64,000 nucleotides of DNA, taken from assembly GCA_050084985.1 (NCBI GenBank), contig JBITNC010000001.1, positions 3,224,001 through 3,288,000 on the forward strand, in the 5' to 3' direction. Numbering within the stretch: position 1 is the stretch's first letter; each line of letters starts with the position of its first letter. Positions 24,715 through 64,000 of this stretch are shown here, piece by piece. This DNA comes from Nageia nagi (lineage: Eukaryota > Plantae > Pinophyta). The translations under genes were made by a program, and so were the position numbers. The notes beneath the pieces are model-generated. The model did not search any database, was not told the origin of the DNA, and worked only from the letters and a program-made list of their open reading frames with translations.

Positions 24715-25023
24715 TTTTCCAATTATCCATATGTGAGGAACTCTTATGTGTCATTTGGCACTATTTAGTTATCCATATGTGAGGAACTCATATGTGCATG
24801 TTCTATTTTGATATAACACTATTCAGTTATCCATATGTGAGGAACTCTTATGTGTCATTTGGCACTGTTCAATTATTCATATGAGAGGAACTCGTATGTG
24901 CATGCTCTATTTTTGGTCAATCTAGCACTATTCAGTTATCCATATTTAAGGAACTCTTATGTGCCTTTTGACACTATTCAGTTATCCATATGAGAGGAAC
25001 TCATATGTGCATGCTATATTTTG
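24715..25023 (+). repeat. Tandem repeat in copia 3' UTR, 6 units alternating ~46 and ~58-63 bp
   Basis: The core TTATCCATATG(T/A)GAGGAACTC(T/A)TATGTG is repeated six times with two alternating tails. Confidence 0.9.
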
Positions 25024-29100: not shown

Positions 29101-31833
29101 AGATATGTTTAAAAGGATTTGTAAACTATTTGCCAAAATACCTCATCGAAATGTAGTATTGTGTAATCAAAATAAATACCTTGAAGGGACCTATGAATAT
29201 TTTTGATAAAATGCTTCATCTAAATGTAGTATTAAGTAAACAACATAAATACCTTGAAGTGACCTATGAATTATTTGATGAAATGCCTCATCGAAATGCA
29301 AACTTATGGGTGGCATTGATCATAGGATATATCCAAAATAAATGCATTGAAAGAGACCTATGAAACATTTAACCAAATGCCTCATCGGATGCAGACGTTA
29401 TGAATACGTTGAAGGGGCTTGTGATTAGTTTGATAAAATGCCTTATCGAATGGAATCTTTATGCTTTGCATTAGACGCAGGAAATGTCCAATAACAGATA
29501 AAATGAAAATATCTATGAATCGTTTGACAAATTGCCTCACCATAATACCAGAAAAGGAACAAAACGGATACGTGGAAAGCACCTGTAAATTGTTTGACCA
29601 ATTGCCTCATCAAATTGCATTTTTATGACCTGCAATGATCACTAATTCACATAAATGGATTCATTGTAAAGGCCAGTGAGTTTTTGGTTAAGATGCCTCA
29701 TCGATTTGCAGTCATGATGTTATGAACAAGATGAAGATGTTGGAAGGACTCGGTAATTGTTTGACAAAATGCCTCATTTGCATGAACACAACTAAGGTAT
29801 GGAAAGGACCCACGAATTGTATGACATAGCAACTCATCAAAATGTAGATAGGTACGTTGATGCCTTATTGAAATGCATTCTTATGTGTAACAATGATCAA
29901 TGGATTTGAATAAAATGGACACATTGAAAGGGCCTGTGTGTTGTGTGATTAAAGGCCTCTCACATGGATTCAATTTTAAAAGCAGAGCTAATCTTTGCGA
30001 TCCTTTGTTAGCATTCTTCCAGCATATACCACCGTGAAAGATCCATTAGAAGATATGAGCACCCATCAAGAGTAGATAAAAAAGGATTTTCATGGAATGT
30101 TGAGATCATGAATGTCCTGCTATACAAGCATGTAGTATATGGGAGGAAAATAGATGATCTAAAATGATGGACCCACGGACTCATAAACTGCAATGATTTT
30201 AATATGCACAAAATGGGTACGCTGAAAGGTTCTGTGATTCCATTGTAGAATATATTTGCGCATTTTTCCATATCATGGTTTTCTTTCCCTAAATATTCTA
30301 AACGGAAACAACCAAAAGTAATTAAACAAAAAACTTAGCAATGAAAAGAGAGAGGATTTTTCGTTGACAGAAAATCCCTAGCATCTGCAAGGATAAAGGG
30401 AGTGTGTAACCTGGTAATATCATCTAAACACTTAGAATAGAGAAAATATTATAAAATATAAGGTTATTCATAGAGAACTTCATTCATGGAGTCCATCTAC
30501 TCCATCTATAACTGTTGAGACTCTGATAGGAGGAAAACAAATGTTAGAATGGAGGTGTATCATATGGTTTATGGTAGATGTTTAGGCACTCCTGTGATCA
30601 TCCCTTCAAGTAGAGTACTATATTTTACGATCACTTTTATTCTACTTAAAAGAATTCAAAAAAGTATCTTGCCTTTTTAAATCCATATGACCTATCTTTT
30701 AAATTGGGAGTAATGCAAGGCCTAGCGTATGAAAATAAACTAGTACCACTTATCTCCATATACAAAATAGTACTTTATTTTCACATGGTTTTCTCAACAC
30801 CTTATTAATATCAAGAAAGTAATTTAAGGATAAAATATTTATGAAACAACTACTACACTAGGAGCTAAATTGAGAAATAACACCTAAAATATAAGATTGA
30901 GCAATGGAGAAGAGATTAACTTCTTGCTTCATAGGATCCAAAACTAATAAAAAAAAGAGATGTCTCCTCCTTTCTTTAAGGTTACCCAAGGTATTTATAG
31001 CTAAAGGTTGCTATAATATATCCAAGAAATGTGCATATTCATCCAACTCATATATTTTTATTTGAAAGGTGTAGGAATTTTATTTTTTGTGTTAGGTTTT
31101 AGGAAATTTTATTTGTAAGTGTTATATCATTAAAAATAATTTGGAACCTTCCTATTAGGCTACAAATATTTCCAATTATTTTATACACCTAACATAAGGA
31201 AACAAATTGTATGGGGATACCTTATCCATTATTTTCACAAAATCCCAAAATAACCTTGTAACCATAAAAAAAATGATAAATAATCCTTTTAACCCTAAAT
31301 TTTTATTTTCACCAAAATTTACTAAAAAATTCTAGTGAAAAATTCTAATTCAAATAATTGGAATATCCCTTGCATAATTTAAAAATAATCAAACAATTTT
31401 TAAAATACATATTATATTATTTTTTTAACACTCATATTTACCTGCGATGATCACTCATCATGCAAGGAATTTTTTTAGTGCATACACACACATACAACAT
31501 TAAAATCGAATAGTATGCAAAATAATTGAGTTGTGCATCTATATGATCTATGAAAGTCCTTGTGGCTATCAAAAATTCAATGCCAATCATTTTCTCTCTT
31601 ACCATATGTTCCCATAACAAACTCATCTTTAGTTCCATGGGATTCCAACTTGACTCCCACGTTGAGTCAACCTATAACATGTGTCACCACAACCTCGAAG
31701 CCAACATCAAATCAACATAAATGACGCATATATCCATTCATAATTCATTTCATAATGCAAATTATTTCAAACTTATTTTCAATTCCCCGAGATCATCAGG
31801 GTCTCAACAAGAGTATTCAGGTAGGTTGTTACA
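26150..31833 (-). repeat. 5' LTR (~5.7 kb) of the large element, same family as the solo LTR 4974-10465
   Basis: TG...CA termini, adjacent PBS, TATA at 30992-30999, and homology at both ends to 4974-10465. Confidence 0.75.
29020..30290 (+). pseudogene. Degenerate PPR (PLS/S-motif) array inside the LTR, antisense to the LTR
   Basis: About 13 copies of a GAATTGTTTGACAAAATGCCTCATCGAAATG-like core. ORF 29181-29363 reads YELFDEMPHRNANLWVALIIGYIQN. SILPA-like motif near 30005-30025. Confidence 0.85.
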
Positions 31834-39164: not shown

Positions 39165-39570
39165 TCTAGTTCCTTTGAGTTTAGAAGAGCATGTTGTAGA
39201 GTGTGAGGTCCTTCCTCTCACTTGTATCAAGTGTAAATGATGTGGATATAGTTTCTTCATGTTTATTGGAACATGTTGTAGAGTGTGAGATCCTTCCTCT
39301 CACTTGTATTAGTGTAGATTATGTGTATTATATATATATTATATTTATTGGAGTATGTTGTAGAGTGTGAGGTCCTTTCTCTCACTTGTATTAGTGTAAA
39401 TAATGTGGATCCAATTTTTTCAGGTTTATTGGAGCATGTTGTAGAGTTTGAAGTCCTTTCTCTCACTTGTGTCAAGGTATATGATATGGGTCCAATTTGT
39501 TTAAATTTATTGAAGCATATTTTAGAGTGTGAGGATATCCCTCTCACTTATATTAGCATAGACATGGTAG
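39165..39570 (+). repeat. Minisatellite, 5 x 81-82 bp
   Basis: Core TTGTAGAGTGTGAGGTCCTT(C/T)CTCTCACTTGTAT recurs at 39194, 39276, 39358, 39439 and 39520. Confidence 0.9.
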
Positions 39571-41715: not shown

Positions 41716-41740
41716 TAGGGTTTAGGGTTTAGGGTTTAGG
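41716..41740 (+). repeat. Plant-type telomeric repeat tract TAGGG(TTTAGGG)2TTTAGG
   Basis: Read directly. The G-rich strand points toward the retroelement array. Confidence 0.9.
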
Positions 41741-42170
41741 TTTTTAAAAATTAGTTTATTAAAAATTAAGTTTTATAAAAATTCAAGTTTTATAAAAATT
41801 CAAGTTTTATAAAAATTCAAGTTTTATAAAAATTTAAGTTTTATAAAAATTCAAGTTTTATAAAAATTTTAAGTTTTATAAAATTAAGTTTTATAAAATT
41901 TTATAAAAATTTGTTTTATAAAAATTTAGTTTTATAAAAAATTAAGTTTTATAAAAATTTAAGTTTTATAAAAATTTAAGTTTTATAAAAATAGTTTAAA
42001 ATTGCTTTATAAAAATTTTGTTTTAAAAAATTTTAGTTTTATAAAAATTTTATAAAATTTTAATTTTATTATTAAGTTTTATAAAAATTTAAGTTTTAAA
42101 AAAATTTAAGTTTTATAAAAAATTTAGTTTTATAAAAATTAAAGTTTTATTAAATTTTTATAAAAATTTA
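41741..42170 (+). repeat. ~17-bp tandem repeat (AAGTTTTATAAAAATTT)n, about 25 imperfect copies
   Basis: Read directly. It runs seamlessly into TTATAAAAATTTACCAAATCAC of the first PLE unit. Confidence 0.95.
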
Positions 42171-42255
42171 CCAAATCACTGGCAGCTTACATTCAAACAA
42201 CGAGAGATAAATTTTAAAAAAATTACAATTTTTCAATTACAAATATCACAATCTA

Positions 42256-42295
42256 TGCAAAACTAGTTTCGGCTCTATAAACCTCATCAGTTGCA
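42256..42295 (-). ncRNA. Minimal type I hammerhead ribozyme (intact core)
   Basis: Minus strand TGCAA CTGATGA GGTTT ATA GAGCC GAAAC TA GTT TTGCA. Stem I is TGCAA/TTGCA, followed by CUGAUGA, stem II, GAAAC, palindromic stem III ACUAGU and a GUU cleavage triplet. Confidence 0.85.
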
Positions 42296-43011
42296 ATGTG
42301 AAAATTACATTGAAATCTATTCATAAAGAAAGAGAGGAGAATGAAATGGTTCTTCCAAAATAAGAAAAATGTTTCAACTTTAGCTCTCACAAAAGATAAA
42401 AATGAGGTACACCTTTCACCTTCAACTCTATCCAAGTGAGACCACTTCCAAAATTAGAGAAAATAAAAAAAAACCTATAAATCTTCCATTTTAAGGAAAA
42501 AATTTCAAATTAAAATTATAAAACATATAATGTATTAAAATATTTATGCTAAATAATTTTAAATAATTAATTTTTAAACTATAGAATAGTTAAAAAATTA
42601 TATAATATAATTATAAAATTATAAAATATAATTAAAAAACTATTCAAAATAGTTAATTAATTAAAATAATCTATGTTGAATAATCAACAAGATTATTAAA
42701 ATTAAAAATAATTAAAACTATATAAAACTATATTTAAAATATAGTAAAATATGATTAAAATTATTAAAGATAATAATTAATTCATTAATTTAAAATAATT
42801 TAAATTATTAAAATGGTTAAATTTATAACTATAGAAATAGCTAAAATTATGAAAAACTAATGATTATTTTCTTAAAAAGTTAAGATTTTAAAGATTGCAA
42901 TACAAAATATTGTAAAATTTAAAAAAATTAAAAATTTAATAATAATAATCGATACTAAACCATAATTTTTATAAAAATTAGAAAAATTAAGACTTAATAT
43001 GAAGTAATTAA

Positions 43012-45210
43012 TTATTTTTGAAATCTACTTTTTATCATAAAAGACCTTAGTGTTCTAGGGTTTCGCTAGCAAATTAGAGGAGAGAGGATGCATTTTAGAG
43101 CTGGAACTTGTTGGCATCACTTGTGGAGTTTAGGGTTTAGGGTGACCCCCAAGTTTAAGTCCTTTACAGAATAGCTAAAGTCAAGCTTGAAGATGAGGGG
43201 GCTTCATTTACTCACTCTTGAAACTCTTAGAGGAAGAGAGAGTAGCTTTGTTTTGTCTCTCCATGAGACTTTACTAAAACATTGAAGTAGAAATCGATTT
43301 GGATAGCCTCTTACCCATAGTCTAAGGAAAAAATTCTTTTTAATATGAACAAAACTAGAAGGATATGATTCTCTCAATAGATATCTCCTCACCTCATTGA
43401 GGATAAAAGATATTTTGTAATGCAATGGATGACATGATCAGCATGGAATATACTGATATGCATTGAGTGGTTTCTAGAAGCATCTAGTGGAGAGAATCCT
43501 TGAAGCGATAAAGTCTGCACCTTTCAAGAATGTAATATCCAGAATGTCCATGATAGTCTGAGAAATGAATGGACTGATCTTTATCTTTGGATAGACACCT
43601 TCGTACTATGCAAGGAAGTCCTTCAACGAATCCAAGGAGCTTGTCCAAATGCCAAACACATCATCCATAAAGTGTTTCAAGAATAGGAGATTAGCATCAT
43701 CAATTTTTTGCAATACTTAGCTTTCCAAATGATAAAAGAATATGCAGATGTAAATAATAGTGAAATTGGAATCCATTGTTGTACCTTTGATTTGTTTATA
43801 GATTTCCCCATCGAATTCTAGCTAATGTTCAATCAAAAGTAATTCTGCCAGACCCATGATGAGCTCAAGCCAAGAAGCATTGAGTTCATTATCCACGATG
43901 AAGGTAGCAAGAGTACTATGAAGTGTGAAAAGGCTAATAAAAATGGGAATACTAGGGTACAATGACTCCACATCGAATGTGAAAGGCAAATAATTGGGTG
44001 GAGCTCTTACAGCAAAAACTTCAGGCAAGAGAAAAATGGAATCAACCAAATGCATTTTCTACTTCAAGAGTACTGGAAGTAATAAGCAATGAAGGAATTT
44101 TGATGCAAGTTCTAGAATGTAGCTAGAGTAGGAGCAAATTGGTCTTCCTACCAAAATTGGCTTGTGAATTTTGGGTAATAGAAAAAATGCGCATCGACGA
44201 CCTTTAGAAGGAAGGTTCTTGAGCAAAAAATTCTTGATTGGTTTAAGGAATTCAAAGTTACCAATGAAGAAATTTAACTTATTCTAGATTATTTGCCATG
44301 GAACCATAAGCATTTTAATTTAGAATATAGCATCTGATAGTTATCTTAAGCCTTTAACAATATATCAAGATCTATCTAGGATGCAAAGGCCTAGATTCTT
44401 ATCTACAGGCTTTATGATGATGGTGGTGTCTTTGTGTAGCAGCTTTAAAATCTTAAGAATCCATCATGGGAGAGAGGGACCTTAGTAAAAGAGCATTTAA
44501 AAAATACCTCTTTAAACTCCCTTTCACTCTTCAGAATAATGGCTTTCAAATCATGGTTCATCTCAAGCAGATTCCACATGGATTTTGAAATTCTGAAAAG
44601 GAAATACATAGTAGAATGGAAGTAATTTGATCCTAGAAGTTTGGCTTGGAGTGAGCTCTCCTTTAGGACCAAAATATGCATGTAGTCAAAGCTTTTGAAA
44701 AAAAATTCTGAATTCAATGTGCATACATTCCATGGTCATGGGTGGTGGCCATAGGATGAACTTCAATCCTAATCCAAGAAGCTTCTTGTCATCATAGCTA
44801 AGTTGCCTGCAAGAGAGATTATGGATAGTAGGATTAGTAATACTTAAATCAATATTAGTAGGAGTTTTTCTTGAGAAAAGGAAGAGTACAAAAAGCTTAG
44901 GATCAGCCACCACACCCCAAAGGTTTATGTGGAAGTGGAGGCATTTGTAGCTAGCTATGCATTGTTGGCATTCTTTAGAAAATGATGGCCATTCTTTCCA
45001 TGCTTCGAGTTCTCTAGTGCATTAGTTGGATGATGTGATGGTTTCTTTGCATTTTGGGTTGTTGGATTGCTTACCTTTGAGCCACTAGGTTGCTTAGCAA
45101 ATGGGGCAAGCTTATTCCCCTTGCAAAAATTACATTTTTCCTTGGAGGGCAATGGTCTAGAGATAGCTGAAATGGAGTTTCGAGGAGTTCCAGAGGTAAC
45201 CCCATTTTTT
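43012..45210 (-). pseudogene. PLE reverse transcriptase ORF2, unit 1 (no endonuclease)
   Basis: LLGLGLKFI..PPP, IIKP.DKNLG, FLLPKIHKPILVGRPIC, FTFDVESLYPSIP, QIKGT.MGS, F(M/V)DDVFGIW, FLRLWVRGYP. Ends ...MIKSRFQK-TAA at 43012. The 5' boundary is inferred. Confidence 0.88.
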
Positions 45211-46586: not shown

Positions 46587-46708
46587 CGTGAAGAGAAGAT
46601 AAAATTTAAGTTTTATAAAAATTTACCAAATCACTAGCAGCTTACAATTCAAACAAGAGACAAATTTCAAAAAATTTACAATTTTGCAATTACAAATATC
46701 ACAATCTA

Positions 46709-46748
46709 TGCAAAACTTATTTTGGCTCTGTAAGGCTCATCAGTTGCA
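46709..46748 (-). ncRNA. Hammerhead ribozyme copy (GAAA mutated to AAAA)
   Basis: TGCAA CTGATGA GCCTTACAGAGCC AAAAT AAGTT TTGCA. Confidence 0.7.
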
Positions 46749-47426
46749 TTGTGAAAATTATATTAAAATCTGTTCATAAATAAGAGAGAAGAGTGAAACG
46801 ATTCTTTCAAAATGAGAAAAATGCTTCAACTTTAGCTCTCACAAAAGATGAAAATGAGGTACATCTTTCACCTTCAACTCCATCCAAGTGAAACCACTTC
46901 TAAAATTAGAGAAAGCAAAAAACTATAGATCTTTCATTTTAAGGAAAAGATTTCAAATTAAAATTATAAAACATATAATGTATTAAAACATTTATGTTAA
47001 ATAATTTTAAATAATTATTTTTTAAACTATAGAATAGTTAAAAAATTATATAATATAATTAAAAAACTATAAAATATAATTAAAAAACTATTCAAAATAA
47101 TTAATTAATTAAAATAATTTATGTTGAATAATCAACAAGATTATTAAAATTAAAAATAATTAAAACTATATTTAAAATATAGTAAAATATAGTTAAAATT
47201 ATTAAAGATAATAATTAATTCATTAATTTAAAATAATTTAAACTGTTAAAATGGTTAAATTTATAACTATAGAAATAGTTAAAATTATTAAAAACTAATG
47301 ATTATTTTTTTAAAAAGTTAAGATTTTAAAGATTGCAAAATTTACAAAATTTAATAATAATAATCAATACTAAACCATAATTTTTCTAAAAATTAGAAAA
47401 ATTAAGACTTAATATGAATTAATTAA

Positions 47427-49610
47427 TTATTTTTGAAATCTACTTTTTATCATGAAAGACCCTAGTTTTCTAGGGTTTTGCTAGCAAATCAGAGGAGAGG
47501 GGATGCATTTTAAAGCTAGAACTTGTTGGCATCACTTGTGGAGTTTAGGGTTTAGGTTGACCCCTAAGTTCAAGTCCTTTACAAAATAGCTAAAGTCAAG
47601 CTTGAAGATGAGGGGGGTTCATTTGCTCACTCTTGAAACTCTTAGAGGAAGAGAGAGCAGCTCTATTTTATCTTCCCATGAGAATTTGCTGAAACATTGA
47701 AGCAAAAATTGATTTGAATAGCCTCTTACCCATAATCTAAAGAAAAAATTCTTTTTGATATGAAGAAAACTAGAAGGATCTAATTCTCTTAGTAGATATC
47801 TCCTCAACTCATTGATGATAAAAGATCTTTACTGATGCAATGGATGCCACAATCGGTATGGAATATACTGGTATGCATTGAGTGGTTTCTGAAAGCATCT
47901 GGTGGAGAGAATCCTTGAAGTGATAAAGTCTACACCTTTGAAGAATGTAATATTTAGAATGTCCATGGTATTCTGAGAAATGCATGGAGTGATCTTTATC
48001 TCCAAATAGATGCCTTTGTACTATGCAAGGAAGTCCTTCAGCAAATCCTGGAAGCTTGTCCAAATGCCAAATGCATCATCCATAAAACATTTGAAGAATA
48101 TGAGATTAGCATCATTAATTTTTTGCAATACCTAGCTTTCTAGATGATAGAGGAATATGCAAGTGTAAATAATAGCAAAATTGGAACCCATTATTGTACC
48201 TCTAATTTATTTGTATATTTCCCCATTGAATTCTAGGTAATGTTCAATCAAAACCAATTCTACCAGACCCATGATGAGCTCAAGCCAAGAAGCATTAAGT
48301 TCATTATCTACGATGAAGGCAACAAGAGTACTACAAAGTGTGAAGAGGCTAGCAAAAATAGGAATACTGGGGTACAATGACTCCACATTGAATGTAAAAA
48401 GCAAACAATCAAATGGAGCTCTTATAGCAAAAACTTCGCACAAGAGGGAAATGGAATCAACAAAATGTGTTTTCTACTTCAGGAGTACAAGAAGTAATAA
48501 GTAATGAAGGAGTTTTGATGCAATTTTTAGAATGTAGCCAAAGTAGGAGCAAATTGGTCTTCCTACCAAAATTGGCTTGTGAATTTTGGGTAATAGAAAA
48601 AATGTGCATGGATGACGTTTAGAAGGAAGGTTCTTGAGTAAGAAATTCTTGATTGGTTTAAGGAATTCAAAGTTACCAATGAAGAAATTTAACTTGTTCT
48701 AGATTATGCTCCATGGAACCTTAGGCATTTTAATGTAGATTGCAGCATATAATAGTTGTCTTAAGCCTTCAGCAGTATACTAGGATCTGTCTAGGATGCA
48801 AAGGCTTAGATTTTATCTGCAAAATTTATGATGATGGTGGTGTCTTTGTGTAGCAGCTTTAAACTCTTAAGAAGCCATAATGGGAGAGAGGGGAGCTTGG
48901 TAAAAGAGCATTTAGAAAATGCCTCTTTAAACTCCCTTTCACCCTTTATAATAATGGCTTCCAAATCATGGTTCATCTCAAGTGAGTTCAACATAGATTT
49001 TGGAATTTTGAAAGGAAAGACACCATAGAATGGAAGTAATTCAATCCTAGATGTTTGGCTTGGATTGGGCTCTCCTTCAGAGCTAAAATATGCATGTAGT
49101 TAGACCTTTAGATAGAAAATTCTGAATTCAATGTGCATAGCTTCCATGGTCATGGGTGGTGGCTGCATGATGAACTTCAATCCTAGTCCAAGAAGCTTCT
49201 TGTCATCATAGTTGAGTTTCTTGCAAGAGAGATTGTGGATAGCAGGATTAGTTATCCTCAAATCAATATCAGTAGGAGTTTTTCTTGAGAAAAGGATGAG
49301 AGCAAAAAGCTTGGGATCGACCACCATGCCCAAGAGGTTTATGTGGAAGTAGGGGCATTTGCATATGGTTGTCATTATTGGCTTTCTTTTGAAAATGGTG
49401 GCCATTCTTTCCATGCTTTGAGTTCATTGGTGCATTGGTTTCTTTGCATTTTTGGTTGCTATATTGCTTCCCTTTGAGCCACCAAGTTGCCCAGTAGATG
49501 GGGTAGGATTCTTCCCCTTATGGGAATTACATTTTGCCTTGGAGGGAAACAATCCAGAGATAGCTAAAATGGAGTTCTAGGGAGGAATTCCAAAGGTAAC
49601 CCCATTTTTT
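47427..49610 (-). pseudogene. PLE RT ORF2, unit 2
   Basis: Same motifs as unit 1 (ORF fragments 47619, 48207, 48806, 49100). Confidence 0.88.
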
Positions 49611-51021
49611 GGTTGAGTTTGGTTCTACTTGCTAGTTGCTCAATTTTTCTTTGTATTGTTGGTCTTATTTTTCTTCTTTATAAATGTAGCAGTAGAAGAA
49701 TGGATCCTAGCAAATCTATGAATTTCATTGATCTCCTTCTGTAATGTTTGTTACAAAGATAAAAAATTCTTGTGGATGAGTTGTATGATAGAAGCATCGA
49801 TGGGCATTTGCTTCATCTTGGGTAGCATCTCTTACATCTTGACAAGTAGCAGTAGCTTGCTCTTTGGCACTTTTTTTTAATGAATGTTGAACCATCCAAT
49901 TATTGCAACACTCTCCAAATGAAGCTATAGTAGCATTAAACCATTCAATGTGTGGCATTGAAAATGAATCAATGAATGGTTGAGCCTTTACTACATCAAT
50001 AGCTTCTATCAAGATGGTTTTGAAGGAGCTTGTTACTATTGCAATGGTAGATCTATGATTGGTCAAAGCCTTTTCCATTGTAGTGATAAATCCTTCAAGG
50101 AATACTTTATTTACTGCACATTGAACACCCTCCAAGTGATTCGCTAGGAGAACATTTCCTTCCTCATTGTTAATGGTAACTTTGGGAGCTTTTACCATCA
50201 AACACTTTGAAAGAGTACCATCATCCTTATGTTTGCATAATTTATTGATGTACTCAATAGACCATTCAACCTACAAAGAGTATCATTTAAATTCCTCAAA
50301 AGATGTGGAGATGAGAGAAGTAATGGGCATAGGAAGCTTCTCAACAACTGGAGGAAGCAATGTTACAATGCTATGAGATGGATGATCCACCATCTCAATA
50401 TTGCCATCAACATCGCATAGAAGTGAGCAAGGTTCTTATGGCTTACTTTGGCTATGAGGTTCTTATGGGTCATAGGTGTAATCTGGTTGGGTGATGATGG
50501 TGGTTGTCCTTGCATTTAGCTGGTCAAAGGTGGTGGTCATCATCATAGTTTGCTAGGGAGCAGTGACATGATGAGTAGCAATGTTTTGAAGTGGTGTAGT
50601 GGTGTATTGGGGAGCAGATGGTGTTGTGGTGAAAGAGGAAAAGGAATGAATGGCATGCTAGAGCTAAAATGCTAGCATTTCAAACCTATCCATGGTGTGC
50701 TATTCCATTTTTTCATAGCAATCATCGAGAGTATAAAACTATTGATTCGTTGCATCGTCAATCACATTTAGATGCTTCATCAGCTAGTGTAACGCTCATT
50801 CCAAATTAGTGATGGTGGAGGTTTCATAGCCACCATGTTGGGGGTTGTCACAAATCATGAGGCATGCCTACCCTTCCAAAGAATGTGGTGTAGCCATCTT
50901 AGCTATCTCTGTTCTCGATCTTGCTTACTTGGAGGAGCAGATTTCTATGTTGATCACCATGAGGAATAGAGTTCCCAGAATCAGTTCGAGGGATGATCTG
51001 TTGTTGTTGATTATTGGCCAT
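49339..51021 (-). pseudogene. PLE ORF1, unit 2
   Basis: ORF fragments 49725-50201 and 50899-51108 (MANNQQQQIIPRTDSGNSIPHGDQHRN). Confidence 0.65.
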
Positions 51022-51146
51022 CATGAAGAGAAGATAAAATTTAAGTTTTATAAAAATTTTCCAAATCATTGGCAACTTACAATTCAAACAATGAGAGACA
51101 AATTTCAAAAAATTTGTAATTTTTCAATTACAAATATCACAATCTA

Positions 51147-51186
51147 TGCAAAATAAGTTTCAACTCTATAAGCCTCATCAGTTGGA
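51147..51186 (-). ncRNA. Hammerhead ribozyme copy (core kept, stems diverged)
   Basis: TCCAA CTGATGA GGCTTATAGAGTT GAAAC TTATT TTGCA. Confidence 0.7.
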
Positions 51187-51848
51187 TTATGAAAATTATA
51201 TTGAAATTTATTCATAAATAAGAGAGGAGAGTGAAACGATTCTTCCAAAATGAGAAAAATGCTTCGACTTCAACTCTCACAAAGGACGAAAATGAGGTAC
51301 ACCTTCAACTCCATCCAAGCGAAACCACTTCCAAAATTGGGGAAAACAAAAAAATTGTAGGTCTTCCATTTTAAGGAAAAGATTTCAAATTAAAATTTTA
51401 AAATATATAATGTATTAAAACATTTATATTAAATAATTTTAAAGAATTAATTTTTTAAACTATTGAATAATTAAAAAATTATATAATATAGTTAAAAACT
51501 ATAAAATATAATTAAAAAACTATTCAAAATAATTAATTAATTAAAATAATCTATGTTGAATAATCAACAAGATTATTAAAATTAAAAATAATTAAAACTA
51601 TATTTAAAATTATTAAAGATAATAATTAATTCATTAATTTAAAATAATTTAAACTATTAAAATAATTAAATTTATAACTATAGAAATAGTTAAAATTATT
51701 AAAAACTAATGATTTTTTTTAAAAAGTTAAGATTTTAAAGATTGCAATATAAAATATTGCAAAATTTAAAAAATTAACAATTTAATAATAATAATCGATA
51801 CTAAGCCATAATTTTTAAAAAAATTAAGACTTAATATGAATTAATTAA

Positions 51849-53496
51849 TTATTTTTGAAATCTTCTTTTTATCTTGAAAGACCTAGTTTTCTAAGATTTT
51901 GCCAACAAATCAAAAGAGGGGGGATGCATTTCAGAGTCAAAACTTGTTGGCATCAGCTGTGGAATTTAGGGTTTAGCATGACCTCCAAGTTCAAGTCCCT
52001 TACAGAAGAGCTAAAGTCAAGCTTGAAGATAAGGGGGTCCATTTGCTCACTCTTCGAACTCTTAGGGGAAGAGAGAGCAACTCTATTTTGTCTCCACATG
52101 AGACTTTCCTAAAACATTGAAGCAAAAATCTATTTGGATAGCCTCTTACCCACAATTTGAAGAAAAAATTCTTTTTAAGATGAAGAAAACTAGAAGGATC
52201 CGATTCTCTCAATAGATATGTCCTCAAGTCATTGATGGCAAAAGATCTTTTCTAATGCAGTGGATGCCACGATCGGTATGGAATATACTAGTATGTGTTG
52301 AGTGGTCTTTGGAAGCATCTAGTGGAGAGAATCCATGAAGCAGCAAAGTTTGCACCTTTGAAGAATGTAATATCCAAAATGTCCATGGTAGTCTGAGAAA
52401 TGCATGGAGTGATCTTTATCTTTGAATAGATGCCTTCCTACTATGCAAGGAAGTCCTTCAACAAATCCAGGGAGCTTGTCCAAATGCCAAACACATCATC
52501 CACAAAGCATTTGAAGAACAGGAGATTAGCATCATCAATTTTTTGCAATACCTGGCTTTCTAGATGATAAAGGAATATGCAACCATAAAAATAGTGAAAT
52601 TGGAACCCATTGCTATACCTATAGTTTTTTTGTAAATTTTCCCATCGAATTTTAGGTAATGTTTAGTCAAAACCAATTCTGCCAGACCCATGATGAGCTC
52701 AAGCCAAGAAGCATTGAGTTCATTATCCATGATGAAGGTAGCAAGAGTTCTATAAAGTGCAAAGAGGCTAGCATAAATAGGAATACTAGGGTATAATGAC
52801 TCCACATTGAATGTGAAAAGTAAATAATTCAGTGGAGCTCTTATAGCAAAAACTTTATGAAAGAGGGAAATGGAATTTTGGAAGGAAAGACACCATAGAA
52901 TGGAAGTAATTCAATCTTTGATGTTTGGCTTGGATTGGGCTCTCCTTCAGAACCAAAATATGCACATAGTCAGAGCTTTTGATAGAAAATTTTGAATTCA
53001 ATGTGCATAGCTTTCATGGTCATGGGTGGTGGTTGCATGATGAAAACCAATCCTAGTCCAAGAAGCTTCTTATCATCATAGCTAAGTTTCCTACAAGAGA
53101 GATTATGGATAGCAAGATTAGTGATCCTCAAATCAATGTCAATAGGAGTTTTTCTTGAGAAAAGGATGAGTGCAAAAAGCTTAGGATCAACCACCACACC
53201 CCAAAGGTTTATGCATAAGCAGGGGTGTTTGCAGATTGCTATGCATTACCAACTTCCTTCTAAAAATGGCAACCATTCTTTCCATGCTTTGAGTTCTCTG
53301 GTGCCTTGGTTGGATGATGTTGTGGTTTCTTTGCATTTTGGGTTATTATATTGCTTCCCTTTGAGCCACCAAGTTGCCCAGCATATTGGATAGGATTCTT
53401 CCCCTTGTAGAAATTACATTTTTCCTTAGAGGGAAATGGTCCAAAGATAGCTGAAATGGAGTTCCCGGGAGGAGTTTCAGAGGTAACCCTATTTTT
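51849..53496 (-). pseudogene. PLE RT ORF2, unit 3, with ~550-bp internal deletion
   Basis: The junction at ~52871 (GGGAAA-TGGAAT-TTTG) removes the ADK and PKIHK/GRPI motifs. Confidence 0.85.
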
Positions 53497-54905
53497 AGTT
53501 GAGTTTGGTTCTGCTTGCTAATTGTTGGTTTTTCTTTGTATTTTTGGTCTTCTTTTCTTCTTTATAGGTGTAGGAGCAGAAGAATGGATCCCAAAAAATC
53601 TATTAATTTCATTAATCTTCTTCTATAATGTTTATTTCAAGGATTTGAAATTCTTGTGGATGAGTTATGCGATAAAAGCATTGATGGGCATCCAATCTGC
53701 TTCATCTTAGGTAGCATCTCTTTCATCTTTATGAGCAGTAATAGCTTGCTCTTTGGCACTTTTTTTCAATTAATTTTGAACCATCCAATTGTTGCAATGC
53801 TCTCTAAATGAAGCTATAGTGGCAATGAACCATTCAATGTGAGGCACTGAGAATGAATCAATGAATGGCTAAGCCTTTACTGCATCAATAGCTTTTATCA
53901 AGATGGTTTTAAAGGAGCTTGTAACTGTTGCAATGGTAGATCTATGATTAGTCAAATCCTTCTCCATTGCAGTGATAAAGCCTTCAAGGAATGCCTTATT
54001 TGCCTCACATTGAACGCCCTCTAAGTGAGTCACCAATAGAGCATTTACTTCGTCATCATTAATGGTAACTTTGAGAGCTTTTACCATTGAACACTTTGAA
54101 AGAGTACCATCACCCTTATGTTTGAATAATTTATTGATGTACTCGATGGATTGTTCAACCTATAGAGAGCATCATTTAAATTCCTTAAAGGATGTGGAGA
54201 TGAGTGAAGTATTGGGCATAGGAAACTTCTTAGCAATTGGAGGAGGCAATGTTCTAGCATTATGAGATGGATGATCCACCATCTTGATGTTGCCATCAAC
54301 ATCGATAGAGGGGAGTGAGGTTCTTGTGGCTTGCTTTGGTTGTGAGGTTCTTATGGCTCATAGGTGAAATTTAGCTAGGTAATGGTGGTGGTTGTACTTG
54401 CATTTAGCTAGGTAGAGGTGGTGGTCATCATCGTAGTTTGCTAGGGAGTGGCAACATGATGAGTAGCAACATTTTGAAGTGGTGCAATGACATGTTGTGG
54501 AGTAGATGGTGCCATGGTGGAAGAGGAAAAGGAATGAATGGTATGTTGGAGCTGAACTACTAGCATTTCAAACCTATCCATGGTGTGCTCTTCCATTTTG
54601 TCATAGAATTCATCGAGAGTATAAAACTGCTGATCGATGCATCATTTAATCACATTTAGATGCTCTATCAACTGGTGTAATGCTCATTCCAAGTTAGGAT
54701 GGTGGAGGTTGTATACCCACCTTTTGGGGGTAGTCACAAATCACAAGGCATTCCTACCCTTCCAATGAATGTGGTGTGGCCATCTCATCTATCTCTATTC
54801 TTGATTGCTTACTTAGGGGGAGCAGATTTCTATGTTGATCACCATGAGGAATAGAGTTCCCAGGCTCAATTTAGGGATCATCTGTTGTTGTTGATTGTTG
54901 GCCAT
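53209..54905 (-). pseudogene. PLE ORF1, unit 3
   Basis: Homologous to other copies (ORF fragment 53869-54087). Confidence 0.65.
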
Positions 54906-54919
54906 CATGAAGAGAAGAT

Positions 54920-56918
54920 AAAATTTAAGTTTTATAACAATTTACCAAATCGCTAGTAGCTTGCAATTCAAACAATGAGAGATAAATTTCAAAAAATTTA
55001 TAATTTTTCAATTACAAATATCACAATCTATGCAAAACTAGTTTTGGCTCTGTAAGCTTATCAATTGCATTGTGAAAATTACATTGAAATCTATTCATAA
55101 ATAAAAGAAGAGAGTGAAATAGTTCTTCTAAAATGAGAAAAATGCTTCAACTTTAGCTTTCACAAAGGACAAAAATGAGGTGCACCTTTCACCTTCAACT
55201 CCATCCAAGTGAAACCACTTCCAAAATTAGGGAAAGCAAAAAACCTATAGGTCTTCCATTTTAAGTAAAAGATTTCAAATTAAAATTATAAAACATATAA
55301 TGTATTAAAACATTTATGTTAAATAATTTTAAATATTTAGATTTTAAACTATAAAATAGTTAAAAAATTATATAATATAGTTAAAAAACTATAAAATATA
55401 ATTAAAAAACTATTCAAAATAATTAATTAATTAAAATGATCTATGTTGGATAATCAACAAGATTATTAAAATTAAAAATAATTAAAACTATATAAAACTA
55501 TATTCAAAATATAGTTGCTCAGTTTTTCTTTATATTGTTGGTCTTGTTTTTCTTCTTTATAGGTGTAAGAGTAGAAGAATGGATCCTAACAAATCTATGA
55601 ATTTCATTGATCTTATTTTGCAATGTTTGTTACAAAGATTAGAAATTCTTATGGATGAGTTATACGATAGAAGCATCGACGAGCATGTAATCTGCTTCAT
55701 CTTGGGCAACATCTCTTACATCTTTATGAGTAGTAGTAGCTTGCTCTTTGGCGCTCTTTTTCAATGAATGTTAAACCATCCAATTATTGCAATGCTCTCC
55801 AAATGAAGCTATAGTAGCATTAAACTATTCAGTGTGCGGTACTGAGAATGAATCAATGAATGGTTGAGCCTTTACTACATCAATAGCTTCTATCTAGATG
55901 GTTTTGAAGGAGCTTGTTACTGTTGCAATGGTAGATCTATGATTGGCCAAAGCCTTCTCCATTACAGTGATAAAGCCTTCAAGGAATGCCTTATTTTCTT
56001 CACATTGAATGCCCTCCAAGTGATCGCTAGGAGAGCATTTCCTTCCTCATTGTTAATGGTAACTTTGGGAGCTTTTACCATCAAACACTTTGGAAGAGTA
56101 CCATCATCCTTATGTTTGCACAATTTATTGATGTACTCAATGGACCATTCAACTTACAAAGAGTATCATTTAAATTCCTCAAAGGATGTGGAGATGAGAC
56201 AAATAATGGGCATAGGATACTTCTCAGTAACTAGAGGAGGCAATGTTCTAGCGCTATGAGATGGATGATCCACCATCTCAATGTTGCCATCAACATTGCA
56301 TAGAGGGGAGAGACATTCTTATGGATTGATTTTGCTACAAGGTTCTTATGGCTCATAGGTGTAATCTGGTTGGGCAATTATGGTGGTTGTCCTTGCATTT
56401 AGCTAGTTAGAGGTGGTGGTCATCATCATAGTTTGCTAGGGAGCGGTGATATGATGAGCAACAATGTTTTGAAGTGGTGCAATGGTGTATTGGGGAGTAT
56501 ATGGTGTTGTGGTGGAAGAGGAAAAGGAATTAATGGCATGCTAGAGCTAAAATGCTAGCATTTCAAACCTATCCATGGTGTGCTATTACATTTTTTCAAA
56601 GCAATCATTGAGAGTATAAAACCATTGATTCGTTGCATCATCAATCACATTTAGATGCTCTATCAATTGGTGTAATGCTATTCCAAACTAGCGATAGTGG
56701 AGGTTTCATACTTGCCATGTTGGGGGTTATCACAAATCATGAGGCATGCCTACCCTTCTAAAGAATGTGGTGTGGCCATCTTAGCTATCTCTATTCTCGA
56801 TCTCCCTTACTTGGGGGGAGCAGATTTCTATGTTGATCACCATGAGGAATAGAGTTCCCAGAATCAGTTTGAGGGATGATCTATTGTTGTTGATTGTTGG
56901 CCATCATGAAGAGAAGAT
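54920..56918 (-). mobile_element. PLE unit 4, internally deleted (entire RT ORF lost; ORF1 5' part 55512-56904 kept)
   Basis: The AT-rich UTR joins ORF1 sequence at TAGTT (55512-55516). Confidence 0.85.
55031..55069 (-). ncRNA. Decayed hammerhead ribozyme copy
   Basis: TGCAA TTGATAA GCTTACAGAGCC AAAAC TAGTT TTGCA. The catalytic core is mutated. Confidence 0.6.
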
Positions 56919-57027
56919 AAAATTTAAGTTTTATAAAAATTTAGCAAATCATTGGCAACTTACAATTCAAATAATGAGATAAATTTCAAAAAATTTGCAA
57001 TTTTTCAATTACAAATATCACAATCTA

Positions 57028-57067
57028 TGCAAAATAAGTTTCAGCTCTATAAGCCTCATCAGTTGCA
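57028..57067 (-). ncRNA. Hammerhead ribozyme copy (core kept, stem III altered)
   Basis: TGCAA CTGATGA GGCTTATAGAGCT GAAAC TTATT TTGCA. Confidence 0.75.
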
Positions 57068-57701
57068 TTATGAAAATTATATTGAAATTTATTCATAAAT
57101 AAGAGAGGAGAGTGAAACGATTCTTCTAAAATGAGAAAAATGCTTCAACTTCAACTCTCACAAAGGACGAAAATGAGGTACACCTTTCACCTTCAACTCC
57201 ATCCAAGTGAAACCACTTCCAAAATTAGGGAAAACAAAAAAATTATAGGTCTTCCATTTTAAGGAAAAGATTTCAAATTAAAATTATAAAACATATAATG
57301 TATTAAAACATTTATATTAAATAATTTTAAAGAATTAATTTTTAAACTATTGAATAGTTAAAAATTATATAATATAGTTAAAAAACTATAAAATATAATT
57401 AAAAAACTATTCAAAATAATTAATTAATTAAAATAATATATGTTGAATAATCAACAAGATTATTAAAATTAAAAATAATTAAAACTATATAAAACTATAT
57501 TTAAAATATAGTAAAATATAGTTAAAATTATTGAAGATAATAATTAATTCATTAATTTAAAATAATTTAAACTATTAAAATAATTAAATTTATAACTATA
57601 GAAATAGTTAAAATTATTAAACAATTTAATAATAATAATCGATACTAAGCCATAATTTTTTAAAAAATTAGAAAAATTAAGACTTAATATGAATTAATTA
57701 A

Positions 57702-59346
57702 TTATTTTTGAAATCTTCTTTTTATCATGAAAGACCTAGTTTTCTAAGATTTTGCCAGTAAATTAGAAGAGGGGGGATGCATTTCAGAGTCAAAACTTGT
57801 TGGCATCACTTGTGGAATTTAGGGTTTAGCATGACCTCCAAGTTCAAGTCCCTTGTAGAAGAGCTAAAGTCAAGCTTGAAGATAAGGGGGTCCATTTTCT
57901 CACTCTTGGAACTCTTAGGGGAAGAGAGAGCAGCTCTATTTTGTCTCCACATGAGACTTTGCTAAAACATTGAAGCAGAAATCTATTTGGATAGCCTCTT
58001 ACCTATAGTTTGAAGAAAAAATTATTTTTGAGATGAAGAAAACTAGAAGGATCCGATTCTCTCAATAGATATGTCCTCAAGTCATTGATGGCAAAAGATA
58101 TTTTCTAATGCAGTGGATGCCATGATTGGTATGGAATATACTAGTATGTGTTGAGTGGTCTTTGGAAGCATCTAGTGGAGAGAATCCATGAAGCAGCAAA
58201 GTTTACACCTTTGAAGAATGTAATATCAAATGTCCATGGTAGTCTGAGAAATTCATGGAGTGATCTTTATCTTCGAATAGATGCCTTCCTACTATGAAAG
58301 GAAGTCCTTCAACAAATCCAGGAGCTTGTCCAAATGCCAAACACATCATCCACAAAGTGTTTAAAGAATCGGAGATTAGCATCATCAATTTTTTGCAATA
58401 CCTGGCTTTCTAGATGATAAAGGAATATGCAAGCATAAACAATAGTGAAATTGGAACCCATTGCTGTACCTATAGTTTTTTTGTATATTTTCCCATCAAA
58501 TTTTAGGTAATGTTTAGTCAAAACCAATTCTGCCAGACCCATGATGAGCTCAAGCCAAGAGGCATTGAGTTCATTATCCATGATTAAGGTAGCAAGAGTA
58601 CTATGAAGTGCAAAGAGGCTAGTAGAAATAGGAATACTAGGGTATAATGACTCCACATCAAATGTGAAAAGCAAACAATCCGATGGAGATCTTATAGCAA
58701 AAACTTCATGAAAGAGGAAATGTAATTTTGAAAGGAAAGACACCATAGAATGGAAGTAATTCAATCTTTGATGTTTGGCTTGGATTGGGCTCTCCTTCAA
58801 AACCAAAATATGCACATAGTTAGACCTTTTGATAGAAAATTTTGAATTCAATGTACATAGCTTCCATGGTCATGGGTGGTGGTTGCATGATGAAAACCAA
58901 TCCCAATCCAAGAAGCTTCTTATCATCATAGCTAAGTTTCCTGGAAGAGAGATTATGGATAGCAAGATTAGTGATCCTTAAATCAATATCAATAGGAGTT
59001 TTTCTTGAGAAAAGGATGAGTGCAAAAAGCTTAAGATCAGCCACCACACCCCAAAGGTTTATGCAGAAGTGGGGGTGTTTGTAGATTACTATGCATTGCT
59101 AGCTTTCTTCTAAAAATGGTGACCATTCTTTCCATGCTTCGAGTTCTCTAGTCCATTGGTTGGATGATGTAGTGGTTTCTTTGCATTTTGGGTTGTTGTA
59201 TTACATCCCTTTGAGCCACTAGGTTGCCCAGCATATGGGGTAGGCTTCTTCCCCTTATATAAATTGCATTTTTCCTTGGAGGGCAATGGTCCAAACATAG
59301 CTAAAATGGAGTTCCTAGGAGGAGTTTCGAAGGTAACCTATTTTTT
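57702..59346 (-). pseudogene. PLE RT ORF2, unit 5, with the same ~550-bp deletion as unit 3
   Basis: ORF 58309-58851 reads FTFDVESLYPSIP...GTAMGSNF...FKHFVDDVFGIW. Deletion junction at ~58721. Confidence 0.88.
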
Positions 59347-60757
59347 AGCTGAGTTTGGTTCTACTTGCTAATTGGTGGGTTTTTCTTTGTATTATTAGTC
59401 TTATTTTTCTTCTTTGTAGCTATAGGATCAGAAGAATGGATCCCAAAAAGTATATGAATTTCATTGATATCCTTTTGCAGTGTTTATTATAGGGATTGGA
59501 AATTCTTGTGGATGAGTTGTGCGATAAAAGCATTGATGGGATCCAATCTACTTGCTCTTGGGTAGCATCTCTTACATCTTGATGAGTAGCAATAGCTTGC
59601 TCTTTGGCACTCTTTTTCAATGAATTTTGAACCATCCAATTGTTGCAATGCTCTCCAAATGAAGTTATAGTAGTAATGAACCATTCAGTGTGAGGCATTG
59701 AGAATAAATCAATGAATGGCTAAGCCTTTACTACATCAATAGCTTTTCAAAAGATGGTTTTAAAAGAGCTTGTAACTGTTGCAATGGTAAATCTATGATT
59801 GGTCAAAGCCTTGTCCATTGTAGTGATAAAGCCTTCAAGGAATACCTTTTTTGCTTCACATTGAACACCCTCCAAGTGAGTCAACAATAGAGCATTTCCT
59901 TCCTCATCATTAATGGTAACTTTGGGAGCTTTTACCATCAAACACTTTGAAAGAGTACCATCATCCTTATGTTTGCACAATTTATTAATGTACTCAATGG
60001 ATTGTTCAACCTACAAAGAGCATCATTTAAATTCCTCAAAGCATGTGGAGATGAGTGAAGTATTGGGCATAGAAAACTTTTCAGCAATTGGAGGAGGAAG
60101 TGTTCTAGCGTTATAAGATGGATGATCCACCATCTCGATGTTGCCATCAACGTTGCACAGAGGGGTGCCACATTCTTATGGCTTACTTTGGTTGTGAGGT
60201 TCTTATGGATCCTAGGTGGAATTTAGCTGGGAAACAATGGTGGTTTTCCTTGCATTTAGCTAGGCAGAAGTGGTGGTCATCATCACAATTTGCTGAGGAG
60301 TGGCAACATGATGAGCAACAACATTTTGAAGTGGTGCAATGACATGTTGGGGAGTAGATGGTGATATGGTGGAAGAGGAAAAGGAATGAATGGCATGTTG
60401 TAGCTGAAATATGAGCATTTTCAACCTATCCATGGTGTGCTATTCCATTTTTCATAGTAGTCATCAAGAGTAAAAATTGTTGATCCATTGCATCATCAAT
60501 CACATTTAGAAGCTCTAATAACTGGTGAATGCTCATTTCAGGTTAGTAAAGGTGGAGGTTGCATACCTACCTTGTTGGGGGATGTCAAAAATCATGAGGC
60601 ATGCCTACCCTTCTAATGAATATGGTGTGGTCATCTCAGCTATCTCTATTCTTGATTGCTTACTTGGGGGAAGCGGATTTCTATGTTGATCACCATGAGG
60701 AATAGAGTTCCCAGACTCAATTCGAGGGATGATCTATTATTGTTGATTGTTGGCCAT
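59059..60757 (-). pseudogene. PLE ORF1, unit 5
   Basis: ORF fragments 59110, 59420 and 59747. Confidence 0.65.
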
Positions 60758-60882
60758 AGTGAAGAGAATATAAAATTTAAGTTTTATAAAAATTTACCAA
60801 ATCACTAGCAGCTTAAAATTCAAACAAAGAGAGACAAATTTCAAAAAAATTACAATTTTTCAATTACAAATATCACAATCTA

Positions 60883-60922
60883 TGCAAAACTAGTTTCAGC
60901 TCTGTAAGCCTCATCAATTGCA
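60883..60922 (-). ncRNA. Hammerhead ribozyme copy (C3-to-U variant)
   Basis: TGCAA TTGATGA GGCTTACAGAGCT GAAAC TAGTT TTGCA. Confidence 0.75.
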
Positions 60923-61600
60923 TTGTAAAAATTACATTGAAATCAATTCATAAATAAGAGAGGAGAGTGAAATTATTCTTCCAAAATAAGAAAAATGCTT
61001 CAACTTTAGCTCTCACAAAGGATGAAAATAAGGTGCACCTTTCACCTTCAACTCCATCCCAATGAAACCACTTCCAAAATTAGGGAAAGCAAAAAAACCT
61101 ATAGGTCTTCCATTTTTAAGGAAGAGATTTCAAATTAAAATTATAAAACATATAATGTATTAAAACATTTATGTTAAATAATTTTAAATAATTATTTTTT
61201 AAACTATAGAATAGTTAAAAAAATATATAATATAGTTTAAAAACTATAAAATAACTATTCAAAATAGTTAATTAATTAAAATAATCTATGTTGGATAATC
61301 AACAAGATTATTAAAATTAAAAATAATTAAAACTATATTTAAAATATAGTAAAATATAGTTAAAATTATTAAAGATAATAATTAATTAATTAATTTAAAA
61401 TAATTTAAACTAATAAAATGGTTAAATTTATAACTATAGAAATAGTTAAAATCATTAAAAACTAATGATTATTTTCTTAAAAAGTTAAGATTTTAAAGAT
61501 TGCAAAATTTACAAAATTAAAAATTTAATAATAATAATCGATACTAAACCATAATTTTTCTAAAAATTAGAAAAATTAAGACTTAATATGAATTAATTAA

Positions 61601-63776
61601 TTATTTTTGAAATCTACTTTTTATCATGAAATACCCTAGTTTTCTAGGGTTTTGCTAGCAAATCAGAGGAGAGGGGATACATTTTAAAGCCAGAACTTAT
61701 TGGCATCACTTGTGGAGTTAAGGGTTTAGGGTGACCCCCAAGTTCAATTCCTTTATAGAATAGCTAAAGTCAAGCTTAAATATGAGGGGGGTTCATTTGC
61801 TCACTCTTGAAACTCTTAGAGGAAGAGAGAGCAGCTCTATTTTGTCTCCCCATGAGAATTTGCTAAAACATTGAAGCAAAAATTGATTTGGATAGCCTCT
61901 TGCCCATAATCTAAAGAAAAAATTCTTTTTGAGATGAAAAAAACTAGAAGGATCTAATTCTCTTAGTAGATATCTCCTCAACTCATTGATGATATAAGAT
62001 CTTTTCTGATGCAATAATTGCCACGATCGATATGGAATATACTTGTATGCATTGAGTGGTTTCTGAAAGCATCTGGTGGAGAGAATCCTTGAAGCGATAA
62101 AGTATACACCTTTGAAGAATGTAATATTTACAATTTCCATGGTATTCTAAGAAATGCATGTAGTTATCTTTATCTCCAAATAGATGCCCTTGTACTATGT
62201 AAGGAAGTCCTTTAGTGAATCTAGGGAGCTTGTCCAAATGCCAAACGCATCACCCATAAAATATTTGAAGAATAGGAGATTAGCAATATCAATGTTTTGC
62301 AATACCTAGCTTTCTAGATGATAGAGGAATATGCAAGCATAAACAACAGTGAAATTGGAATCCATTACTGTACTTCTAATTTATTTGTAGATTTCCCCAT
62401 TGAATTCCAGGTAATGTTCAATGAAAACCAATTCTGCCAAACCCATGATGAGGCCAAGAAGCGTTAAGTTCATTATCTATGATGAAGGTAATAAGATTAC
62501 TATGAAGTGTGAAGAGGCTAGCAAAAATAGGAATATTGGGGTACAATGACTCCACATTGAATGTGAAAAGAAAATAATTGGATGGAGCTCTTATAGCAAA
62601 AACTTTGCACAAGAGGGAAATGGAATCAACCAAATGTGTTTTCTACTTTAGGAGTACAAGTAATAAGTAATGAAGGATTTTTTATGTAGGTTTTAGAATG
62701 TAGCTAGAGTAGGAGCAAATTGGTATTCCTACCAAAATTGGCTTGTGAATTTTGGGTAATAGAAAAAATGTGCATGGATGACCTTTAGAAGGAAGGTTCT
62801 TGAGCAAGAAATTCTTGATTGGTTTAAGGAATTCAAAGTTACCAATGAAGAAATTTAACTTGTTATAGATTATTCTCAATGGAACCTTAGGAATTTTAAT
62901 GTAGACTACAACATCTAATAGTTATCTTAAGCCTTTAGTAGTATACTAGGATCTATATAGGATGCAGAGGCCTACATTCTTATCTGCAAAATTTATGATG
63001 ATGGTGGTGTCTTTGTGTAGCAGCTTTAAACTCTTAAGAAGCCGTTATGGGAGAGAGGGGAGTTTGGTAAAAGAGCATTTAGAAAATACCTATTTAAACT
63101 CCCTTTCACTCTTTAGAATAATGGCTTCCAAATCATGGTTCATCTCAAGTGAATTCCACATGGATTTTGGAATTTTGAAAGGAAAGACACCATAGAATGG
63201 AAGTAATTCAATCCTAGATGTTGGCTTGGACTGGGCTCTCCTAAAGAACCAAAATATGCATGTAGTTAGAGCTTTAGATAGAAAATTTTGAATTCAATGT
63301 GCATAGCTTCCATGGTCATGGGTGGTGGCTACGTGATGAACTTCACTCCCAGTTCAAGAAGATTCTTGTCATCGTAGTTGAGTTTCTTGCAAGAAAAATT
63401 ATGGATAGCAGGATTAGTTATCCTCAAATCAATATCAGTAGGAGTTTTTCTTCAGCAAAGGATGAGAGAAAAAAGCTTGGGATTGGCCACCATTCCCAAG
63501 AGGTTCATGTGGAAGTAGGGGCATTTGCAAATGGTTATGCATTACTGGCTTTCTTTTGAAAATGGTGGCCATTCTTTCCATGCTTTGAATTCATTTGTGC
63601 ATTGCTTTGTTTGCATTTTTGGTTACTAGATTGCTTCCCTTTGAGCCACCAAGTTGCTTAACAGATGGGGTAGGCTTCTTACCCTTGCAAAAATTGCATT
63701 TTTCCTTAAACGGAAACAGTCCAGAGATAGATGAAATGGAGTTCTAGGGAGGAGTTTTGAGGTAACCCCATTTTTT
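61601..63776 (-). pseudogene. PLE RT ORF2, unit 6
   Basis: FFLLPKIHKPILVG, FNVESLYPNIP, QKPLNAY.YIPYRSW, FFRLWARGYP. Confidence 0.88.
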
Positions 63777-64000
63777 GGTTGAGTTTGGTTCTACTTGCTA
63801 GTTGCTCAATTTTTCTTTATATTGTTGGTCTTATTTTTCTTCTTTATAGGTGTAGGAGTAGAAGAATGGATCCTAACAAATTTATGAATTTCATTGATCT
63901 CCTTCTACAATGTTTGTTACAGAGATTGGAAAATCTTATGGATGAGTTGTGCGATAGAAGCATCGATAAGCATCTAATCTACTTCATCTTGGGCAGCATC

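Follow-up and report, generated by a model that had tools for sequence, protein, structure and literature searches.

Penelope-like elements (PLEs) encode reverse transcriptases (RTs) that form the sister group of telomerase reverse transcriptase (TERT) (PMC8557442). The endonuclease-less PLEs Athena and Coprina, including the Terminons, are attached to telomeres (Gladyshev & Arkhipova 2007 and Arkhipova et al. 2017, via PMC8557442; PMC12477314; PMC13159263). The start of cDNA synthesis has been located in the anole element PAc, where the hammerhead ribozyme cuts the multi-unit transcript at +26 and the RT starts at +111 to +118, that is, 85-92 nt after the cut, a position that accounts for the PLE 'tail' (PMC11167929).

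Here we describe a locus from Nageia nagi in which the 3′ tail of such an element meets plant telomere repeats. The window, by which we mean the whole stretch of DNA analyzed, is 64,000 nucleotides long. Compared with Athena and Coprina as described there, the locus is alike in its RT-only open reading frame (ORF) on the C-strand, in its putative 3′ hammerhead motif and short telomere-complement seed, in the joining of the element 3′ end to G-strand telomere repeats and in its head-to-tail chain of units, as in Coprina-1_Alen (PMC13159263). It differs from those descriptions in that the seed is degenerate, CTTAAA in lieu of CCCTAAA, and in that the locus is dead and probably interstitial. The junction in the window also holds a 430-bp array of element-derived 17-mers, a feature absent both from the descriptions of Athena and Coprina consulted and from about 10 telomere junctions in relatives. 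An earlier note on this DNA had tentatively attributed the array to telomerase-like reiterative synthesis by the element's own RT.

The Penelope-like element and its units

Six decayed head-to-tail units of ~4.4 kb extend from the end of the array to the end of the window, with the minus strand as the sense strand. In unit 1 (u1), a decayed RT ORF at 43126-44904 (minus strand) aligns by tblastn with residues 4-600 of protein P0001 at 49% identity. It is followed, on the same strand, by a 3′ untranslated region that is AT-rich and contains degenerate repeats of 10, 21 and 24 bp (42291-43125), by a putative hammerhead-ribozyme core (42266-42290) made up of CTGATGAG, a 4-bp stem II, GAAAC and then the palindrome ACTAGT, and by a tail of ~90 nt (42171-42260) that reaches from the inferred hammerhead cut to the array. 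The tail is conserved in all six units of the alignment. Internal units u2 to u6 occupy 46601-64000 (minus strand) with boundaries at 51036, 54920, 56919 and 60772; a 545-bp deletion in the RT is common to u3 and u5, u4 is without ~2.4 kb and the window end cuts u6.

The minus strand encodes the RT motifs LPKIHKP...GRPI, which is of PLE type, FDVESLYPSIP, GTAMGS and FVDDVF, the second and last of these within the ORF at 58309-58851 (minus strand). This 180-aa piece gave 4261 protein matches, the best of which are a 604-aa Logan protein (52%), Gb_11119 of Ginkgo biloba (49%) and uncharacterised proteins of Selaginella moellendorffii (41%). P0001 aligns to its last residues at 43126, with AT-rich non-coding DNA beyond. 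Pfam detected no GIY-YIG endonuclease in P0001, P0005 or P0009, only a weak match to RVT_1, and returned no match for the short ORF pieces of the window; by eye, RT motifs A and B′ were not seen to be separated by a long insert, a point of difference from telomerase. The RT matches, together with the alignment of P0001 without an endonuclease domain, identify the element, as judged from its sequence, as a decayed endonuclease-less PLE.

The 3′ end of the unit 1 ORF reads through (CCCTAAA)2 (43129-43142 on the plus strand). The RT frame ends through this repeat at 43126-43145, 47541-47557 and 61718-61731, and the C terminus of P0001, an intact relative, aligns across it, so that the telomere dimer is part of the coding 3′ end, ~870 nt upstream of the hammerhead. 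A second telomere dimer in this position is a further difference from Athena and Coprina.

Rfam found no family in 41000-64000 and no hammerhead match at E ≤ 1, and the hammerhead copy of u2 is mutated. Within a comparison set of 80 related loci from metagenomes, a hammerhead core followed by GAAACTAGTTTGC is present in L005, L009, L010, L012 and L013 and matches the core in the window.

Trees built on three segments group u3 with u5, u2 with u6 and u2 with u4, and set u1 apart. Alternate units are thus sisters (u3/u5 and u2/u4/u6) in an ABABA pattern, and the divergence between units is 9-17%. This pattern and the shared 545-bp deletion indicate that DNA duplication acted at the locus: the chain grew by DNA-level duplication of a two-unit block and not by successive terminal additions.

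The telomere junction and the inferred cDNA start site

Four plant-type telomere repeats of G-strand sequence, TAGGG(TTTAGGG)2TTTAGG, occupy 41716-41740 (plus strand) and meet the array at 41740/41741, where TTTAGG of the telomere is in register with TTTAAG of the element. When every telomere phase is set against every unit phase, a 6-nt overlap with at most one mismatch arises in 2 of 119 combinations, and the observed pairing is one of these two microhomology registers, which bears out the in-register junction reported in the earlier note. The element is oriented as expected if its cDNA was made on a G-strand 3′ end.

Up to 41715, the DNA is ORF-poor and unrelated to the element. No homology to the element units was found left of the junction, and the left flank was therefore rejected as part of the element. 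It contains unrelated minisatellites at 39187-39556 (81 bp × 4.5), 24723-25022 (109 bp × 2.8) and 29127-29298 (73 bp × 2.4), none of them near 25 copies.

On the other side, the homology of unit 1 to the other units ends exactly at a 25-nt motif. In unit 2 this motif lies at 46601-46625 (plus strand) and comprises 8 + 9 + 8 nt, or 1.5 copies of the 17-mer, and equivalent motifs are found at 51036-51060, 54920-54944, 56919-56943 and 60772-60796. The alignment confirms that it stands once in each internal unit, as had been noticed before, with one substitution each in u3 and u4. Measured from the inferred hammerhead cut in the 3′ direction, the motif starts after ~90 nt and the CTTAAA seed after ~105 nt. 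This arrangement corresponds to that of PAc, whose multi-unit transcript has one defined site, internal to it, at which cDNA begins: the junction in the window lies ~90-105 nt beyond the cut on its 3′ side, and the sequence of the internal units runs straight through this point. PAc differs in that it has an endonuclease and starts without primer homology, whereas the start in the window shows telomere microhomology (PMC11167929).

Two sets of relatives show the same kind of transition. In L029, hammerheads are present at both ends, and the following ~85 nt are identical up to the seed AACCTAACC; past the seed, the 5′ (internal) copy goes on into the element and the 3′ (terminal) copy into (CCCTAA)n. 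Between L005 and L012, identity is 100% as far as a two-unit CCCTAAA seed; the two then diverge, L005 continuing and L012 entering (CCCTAAA)n at the contig end. Since the window follows the logic of L029 and of L005/L012, with a degenerate seed, we accept that a telomeric end was extended from a site in the tail. The 25-nt motif is supported as the putative site of both cDNA start and telomere annealing, and a CUUAAA-type seed in the element tail is the most likely place from which the telomere 3′ end was extended. The proposal that the RT primed on the telomere at CUUAAA is accordingly one that the microhomology register, the distance from the hammerhead, L029 and L005/L012 all favor. Both the junction and the priming logic are real and fit the known biology of endonuclease-less PLEs.

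The start site in this plant PLE is close to the internal start measured biochemically in an endonuclease-bearing PLE, and two metagenomic relatives are alike. Taken together, these likenesses suggest that PLEs with and without an endonuclease may share a 'tail' start site.

In the nearest relatives (ERZ10344xx contigs), micro- or minisatellites are often found inside the elements in the stretch of tail 50-90 nt past the hammerhead, namely (TC)14-24 in L002, L007, L009 and L013, (TCAC)12 in L010 and a 26-mer × 7 in L003. Mean tandem-repeat cover among the relatives is 0.107 at +30 to +150 versus 0.034 upstream, and it exceeds 20% in 5 of 24 loci. At the telomere junctions themselves, a non-telomeric array is present in none of about 10 cases among the relatives; all of these junctions are direct.

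The 17-bp array at the junction

TRF and wrap-around alignment delimit an array of ~27 degenerate 17-bp units at 41741-42170 (plus strand), with the consensus AAGTTTTATAAAAATTT. TRF reports a period of 17 with 24.2 copies, 78% matches and 11% indels. By wrap-around alignment, 5 of the 27 units are perfect copies of the consensus and 4 carry an identical T>C change, and the others differ mostly by deletions; the array as a whole shows 17 substitutions, 43 deleted bases and 1 inserted base, with the deletion-dominated differences sited in homopolymer runs. The unit is AT-rich and contains a 10-bp palindrome, TTTTATAAAA. Folded as single-stranded DNA, 41741-41900 forms long hairpins with an energy of -29.8 kcal/mol, compared with -16.5 in shuffles (z=-6.1).

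The array consensus is the unit of the internal 25-nt motif, and the last copy runs on in register into the first PLE unit, in agreement with the earlier description. Allowing at most one mismatch, the 17-mer occurs 21 times in the 64-kb window against 0.02 expected, and every occurrence lies inside the array or once per internal unit. Decay of telomere repeats was rejected as a source of the 17-mer, which by eye has 8 mismatches in 17 against 2.5 TTTAGGG units, mostly transversions. Exact scans for the 25-nt motif in metagenome contigs and for two tandem 17-mers in viral contigs gave no match, in collections that are uninformative for a gymnosperm.

The tract might not derive from this element copy at all, being instead a minisatellite that already stood beside the telomere repeats and served as the target, or an artefact of long-read assembly. 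An insertion bias for microsatellites has been reported for PLEs (PMC8557442), and read errors would likewise produce deletion-dominated differences in homopolymer runs. Neither version sits well with an array whose consensus is identical to the element motif and whose last copy continues into the element. No such 17-mer is found elsewhere in the 64 kb, a satellite distal to the telomere repeats has no obvious origin except addition onto the end, and the neighbouring sequence bears no sign of poor assembly. We regard both versions as improbable.

Variant units are unevenly distributed along the array. The 4 identical C-variant units fall within 5 consecutive positions (p=0.005), in a block at 41768-41852, and the intact units likewise fall into three groups (runs test for clustering, p=0.025), such that the array consists of three patches of near-identical units with degenerate units between them. 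These two forms of clustering argue for block duplication, and growth of the array was multi-step and block-wise; we infer that growth of this kind accounts for most of it. The order of variants, which the earlier note had put forward as a means of telling block duplication from independent errors, thus speaks for the former. Overall, the 17-mers have changed by 3.7% substitutions plus indels, about as much as decay would be expected to produce in the time that it took the element units to diverge by 9-17%. With change in this range, no error-rich synthesis needs to be invoked.

Growth of the array

We propose that a chromosome end, or another free telomeric 3′ end, terminating in TTTAGG would have annealed to CUUAAA in the element RNA, a degenerate telomere-complement seed ~100 nt downstream of the hammerhead, and that the RT would have copied the RNA from there. 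The 25-nt motif at the start point, with its 1.5 copies and 10-bp palindrome, would then have expanded to ~27 copies. Most of this expansion would have been that of a hairpin-forming, AT-rich minisatellite whose DNA lengthened in several steps, by unequal exchange or by slippage during replication. The RT may also have stuttered briefly at initiation and so given the first extra copies, although this is not needed. The remaining array of element units grew by the duplication of the two-unit block, and the junction is a genuine join of telomere and PLE 3′ tail that is probably now interstitial, the element being long dead. To the central part of this account, namely that the array is a hairpin-prone AT-rich minisatellite seeded by the 1.5-copy motif and that some, and probably most, of its growth took place at the DNA level, we give about as much credence as doubt.

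AT-rich hairpin-forming minisatellites expand at the DNA level, as in the human fragile sites FRA16B and FRA10B. The array shares with these sites an AT-only palindromic unit, strong single-strand hairpins and a patchwork of homogeneous and degenerate blocks; it differs from them in having been seeded by the terminal motif of a retroelement and in lying directly against telomere repeats.

Several observations weigh against a purely DNA-level origin. Exact 8-nt direct repeats at a spacing of 9-30 number 11-16 per unit, or roughly 90 proto-repeat sites in the whole array of units, and it would be a striking coincidence that the sole large expansion among them falls at precisely the site where cDNA begins. 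None of the other five 25-nt motifs ever expanded. Over the same time, the AT-rich 10- and 21-bp repeats of the units, which were already multi-copy, changed by one to a few units: the alignment shows unit-to-unit differences in the 3′ untranslated repeats only as indels of 10, 16, 21 or 77 bp. Large copy-number differences of the 21-bp repeat, read from TRF rows, were rejected by this alignment, and an argument from frequent large slippage was dropped for the same reason. The mean distance between adjacent array units does not fall significantly below the random expectation (p=0.18), and the micro- and minisatellites in the tails of relatives hint at a repeat-generating process that may be tied to the start site.

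Such observations lend some weight to synthesis by the RT. It is possible, though we think it doubtful, that the PLE RT made most of the array before element synthesis, either processively or by repeated abortive additions of 17 nt. In a specific form that we hold equally tentatively, the cDNA end AAAATTTA would have paired again and again with the 3′ copy of the 8-nt repeat in the RNA, the 17 nt being copied anew each time, and the variant blocks would have arisen by later DNA turnover. The fullest version, in which an endonuclease-less PLE RT primed on a plant telomere end, re-aligned on the 8-nt RNA repeat and laid down an element-encoded 17-nt terminal repeat, with the tail satellites of relatives as the same stutter, seems to us rather unlikely. 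If the RT did make the array, the locus would stand, as a natural intermediate, between cDNA synthesis by a retrotransposon and the addition of repeats in the manner of telomerase, and would do so in the family closest to TERT.

The position of the array is what reiteration predicts, for it begins precisely where synthesis is inferred to start, in the register of the seed, and its consensus equals the internal motif unit; this is, however, a single junction. Amplification of the motif only at the telomere junction holds within the window, but the internal units that would serve as controls are duplicates of one another and do not amount to five independent tests. The other repeats in the units, nearly static as they are, lend reiteration some support. 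So does the template, which holds the 8-nt direct repeat needed for realignment. The 8 + 9 + 8 layout that had been likened to a telomerase template is indeed present, but it is not distinctive among units in which 8-nt repeats at such spacing are common.

The likeness to telomerase extends to the 1.5-copy template with its terminal direct repeat and to the extension of a telomeric 3′ end. Unlike telomerase, the window has no evident template boundary, anchor or dedicated RNA. A hybrid made up almost wholly of A/T pairs would be weak and could easily slip, but no boundary is seen that would stop the RT after the second 8-mer, and the RNA around the start site has no structure beyond chance when its fold is compared with shuffles (z=+0.8), so the tail is not specially structured.

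The array units themselves point in two directions. Shortened units dominate (43 bases deleted, 1 inserted), a bias that inexact realignment would produce. Against this, one fixed RNA template cannot propagate a variant, and the clustered identical C variants are therefore incompatible with independent copying of one such template; they do not look like telomerase products in this respect. Later DNA turnover could nevertheless hide an RT origin of the array.

Precedent among other elements is likewise mixed. For some LINEs, namely the I element, with (TAA)n, and UnaL2, with (TGTAA)n, slippage of the template at the repeats of the 3′ tail is an accepted idea, and in this 'slippage retrotransposition' an RT re-aligns on a short repeat at a target-primed start and adds tandem copies (PMC3747384). 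The tails of LINEs and SINEs, however, have units of 3-8 nt, are found at the end of every copy and vary between copies (PMC3747384), whereas the window has 17-nt units in ~27 copies at one known junction. For PAc, reiteration is not reported (PMC11167929). Tandem repeats do occur in the equivalent tail window of close relatives, but arrays are absent from the ~10 junctions of relatives, including the two clean pairs of internal and terminal copies. With a contrast that is pseudo-replicated, variants that cluster, a layout that is common and junctions that are direct in relatives, the evidence brought forward in the earlier note does not support telomerase-like reiteration. The reading that we prefer, DNA-level growth of a minisatellite from the motif, is the more ordinary one, and it still ties the start of cDNA synthesis, in an endonuclease-less PLE from a plant, to a degenerate seed of telomere-like sequence ~100 nt past the hammerhead.

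Some further features of the relatives were recorded. The two copies in L029 (1-130 and 3560-3745) have a pseudo-LTR layout, with a seed of one unit. The segments compared between L005 (5801-7109) and L012 (5730-6302) look like a recently active telomere-attaching PLE in a host with plant-type telomeres, and they carry ~200 nt of degenerate telomere-like repeats between hammerhead and seed. In L002, L007, L009, L010 and L013, the tail repeats are located within the elements, 45-110 nt past the hammerhead, and away from telomere junctions. Degenerate AT-rich arrays of 25-26-mers are found in L003 (4417-4597) and L004 (4805-4876). Finally, L009 contains at 5506-5815 two hammerhead-bearing direct repeats ~250 nt apart with (TC)24 between them, a retrozyme-like or pseudo-LTR tandem, and the second of these repeats has CTTAAGAG in place of CTGATGAG.
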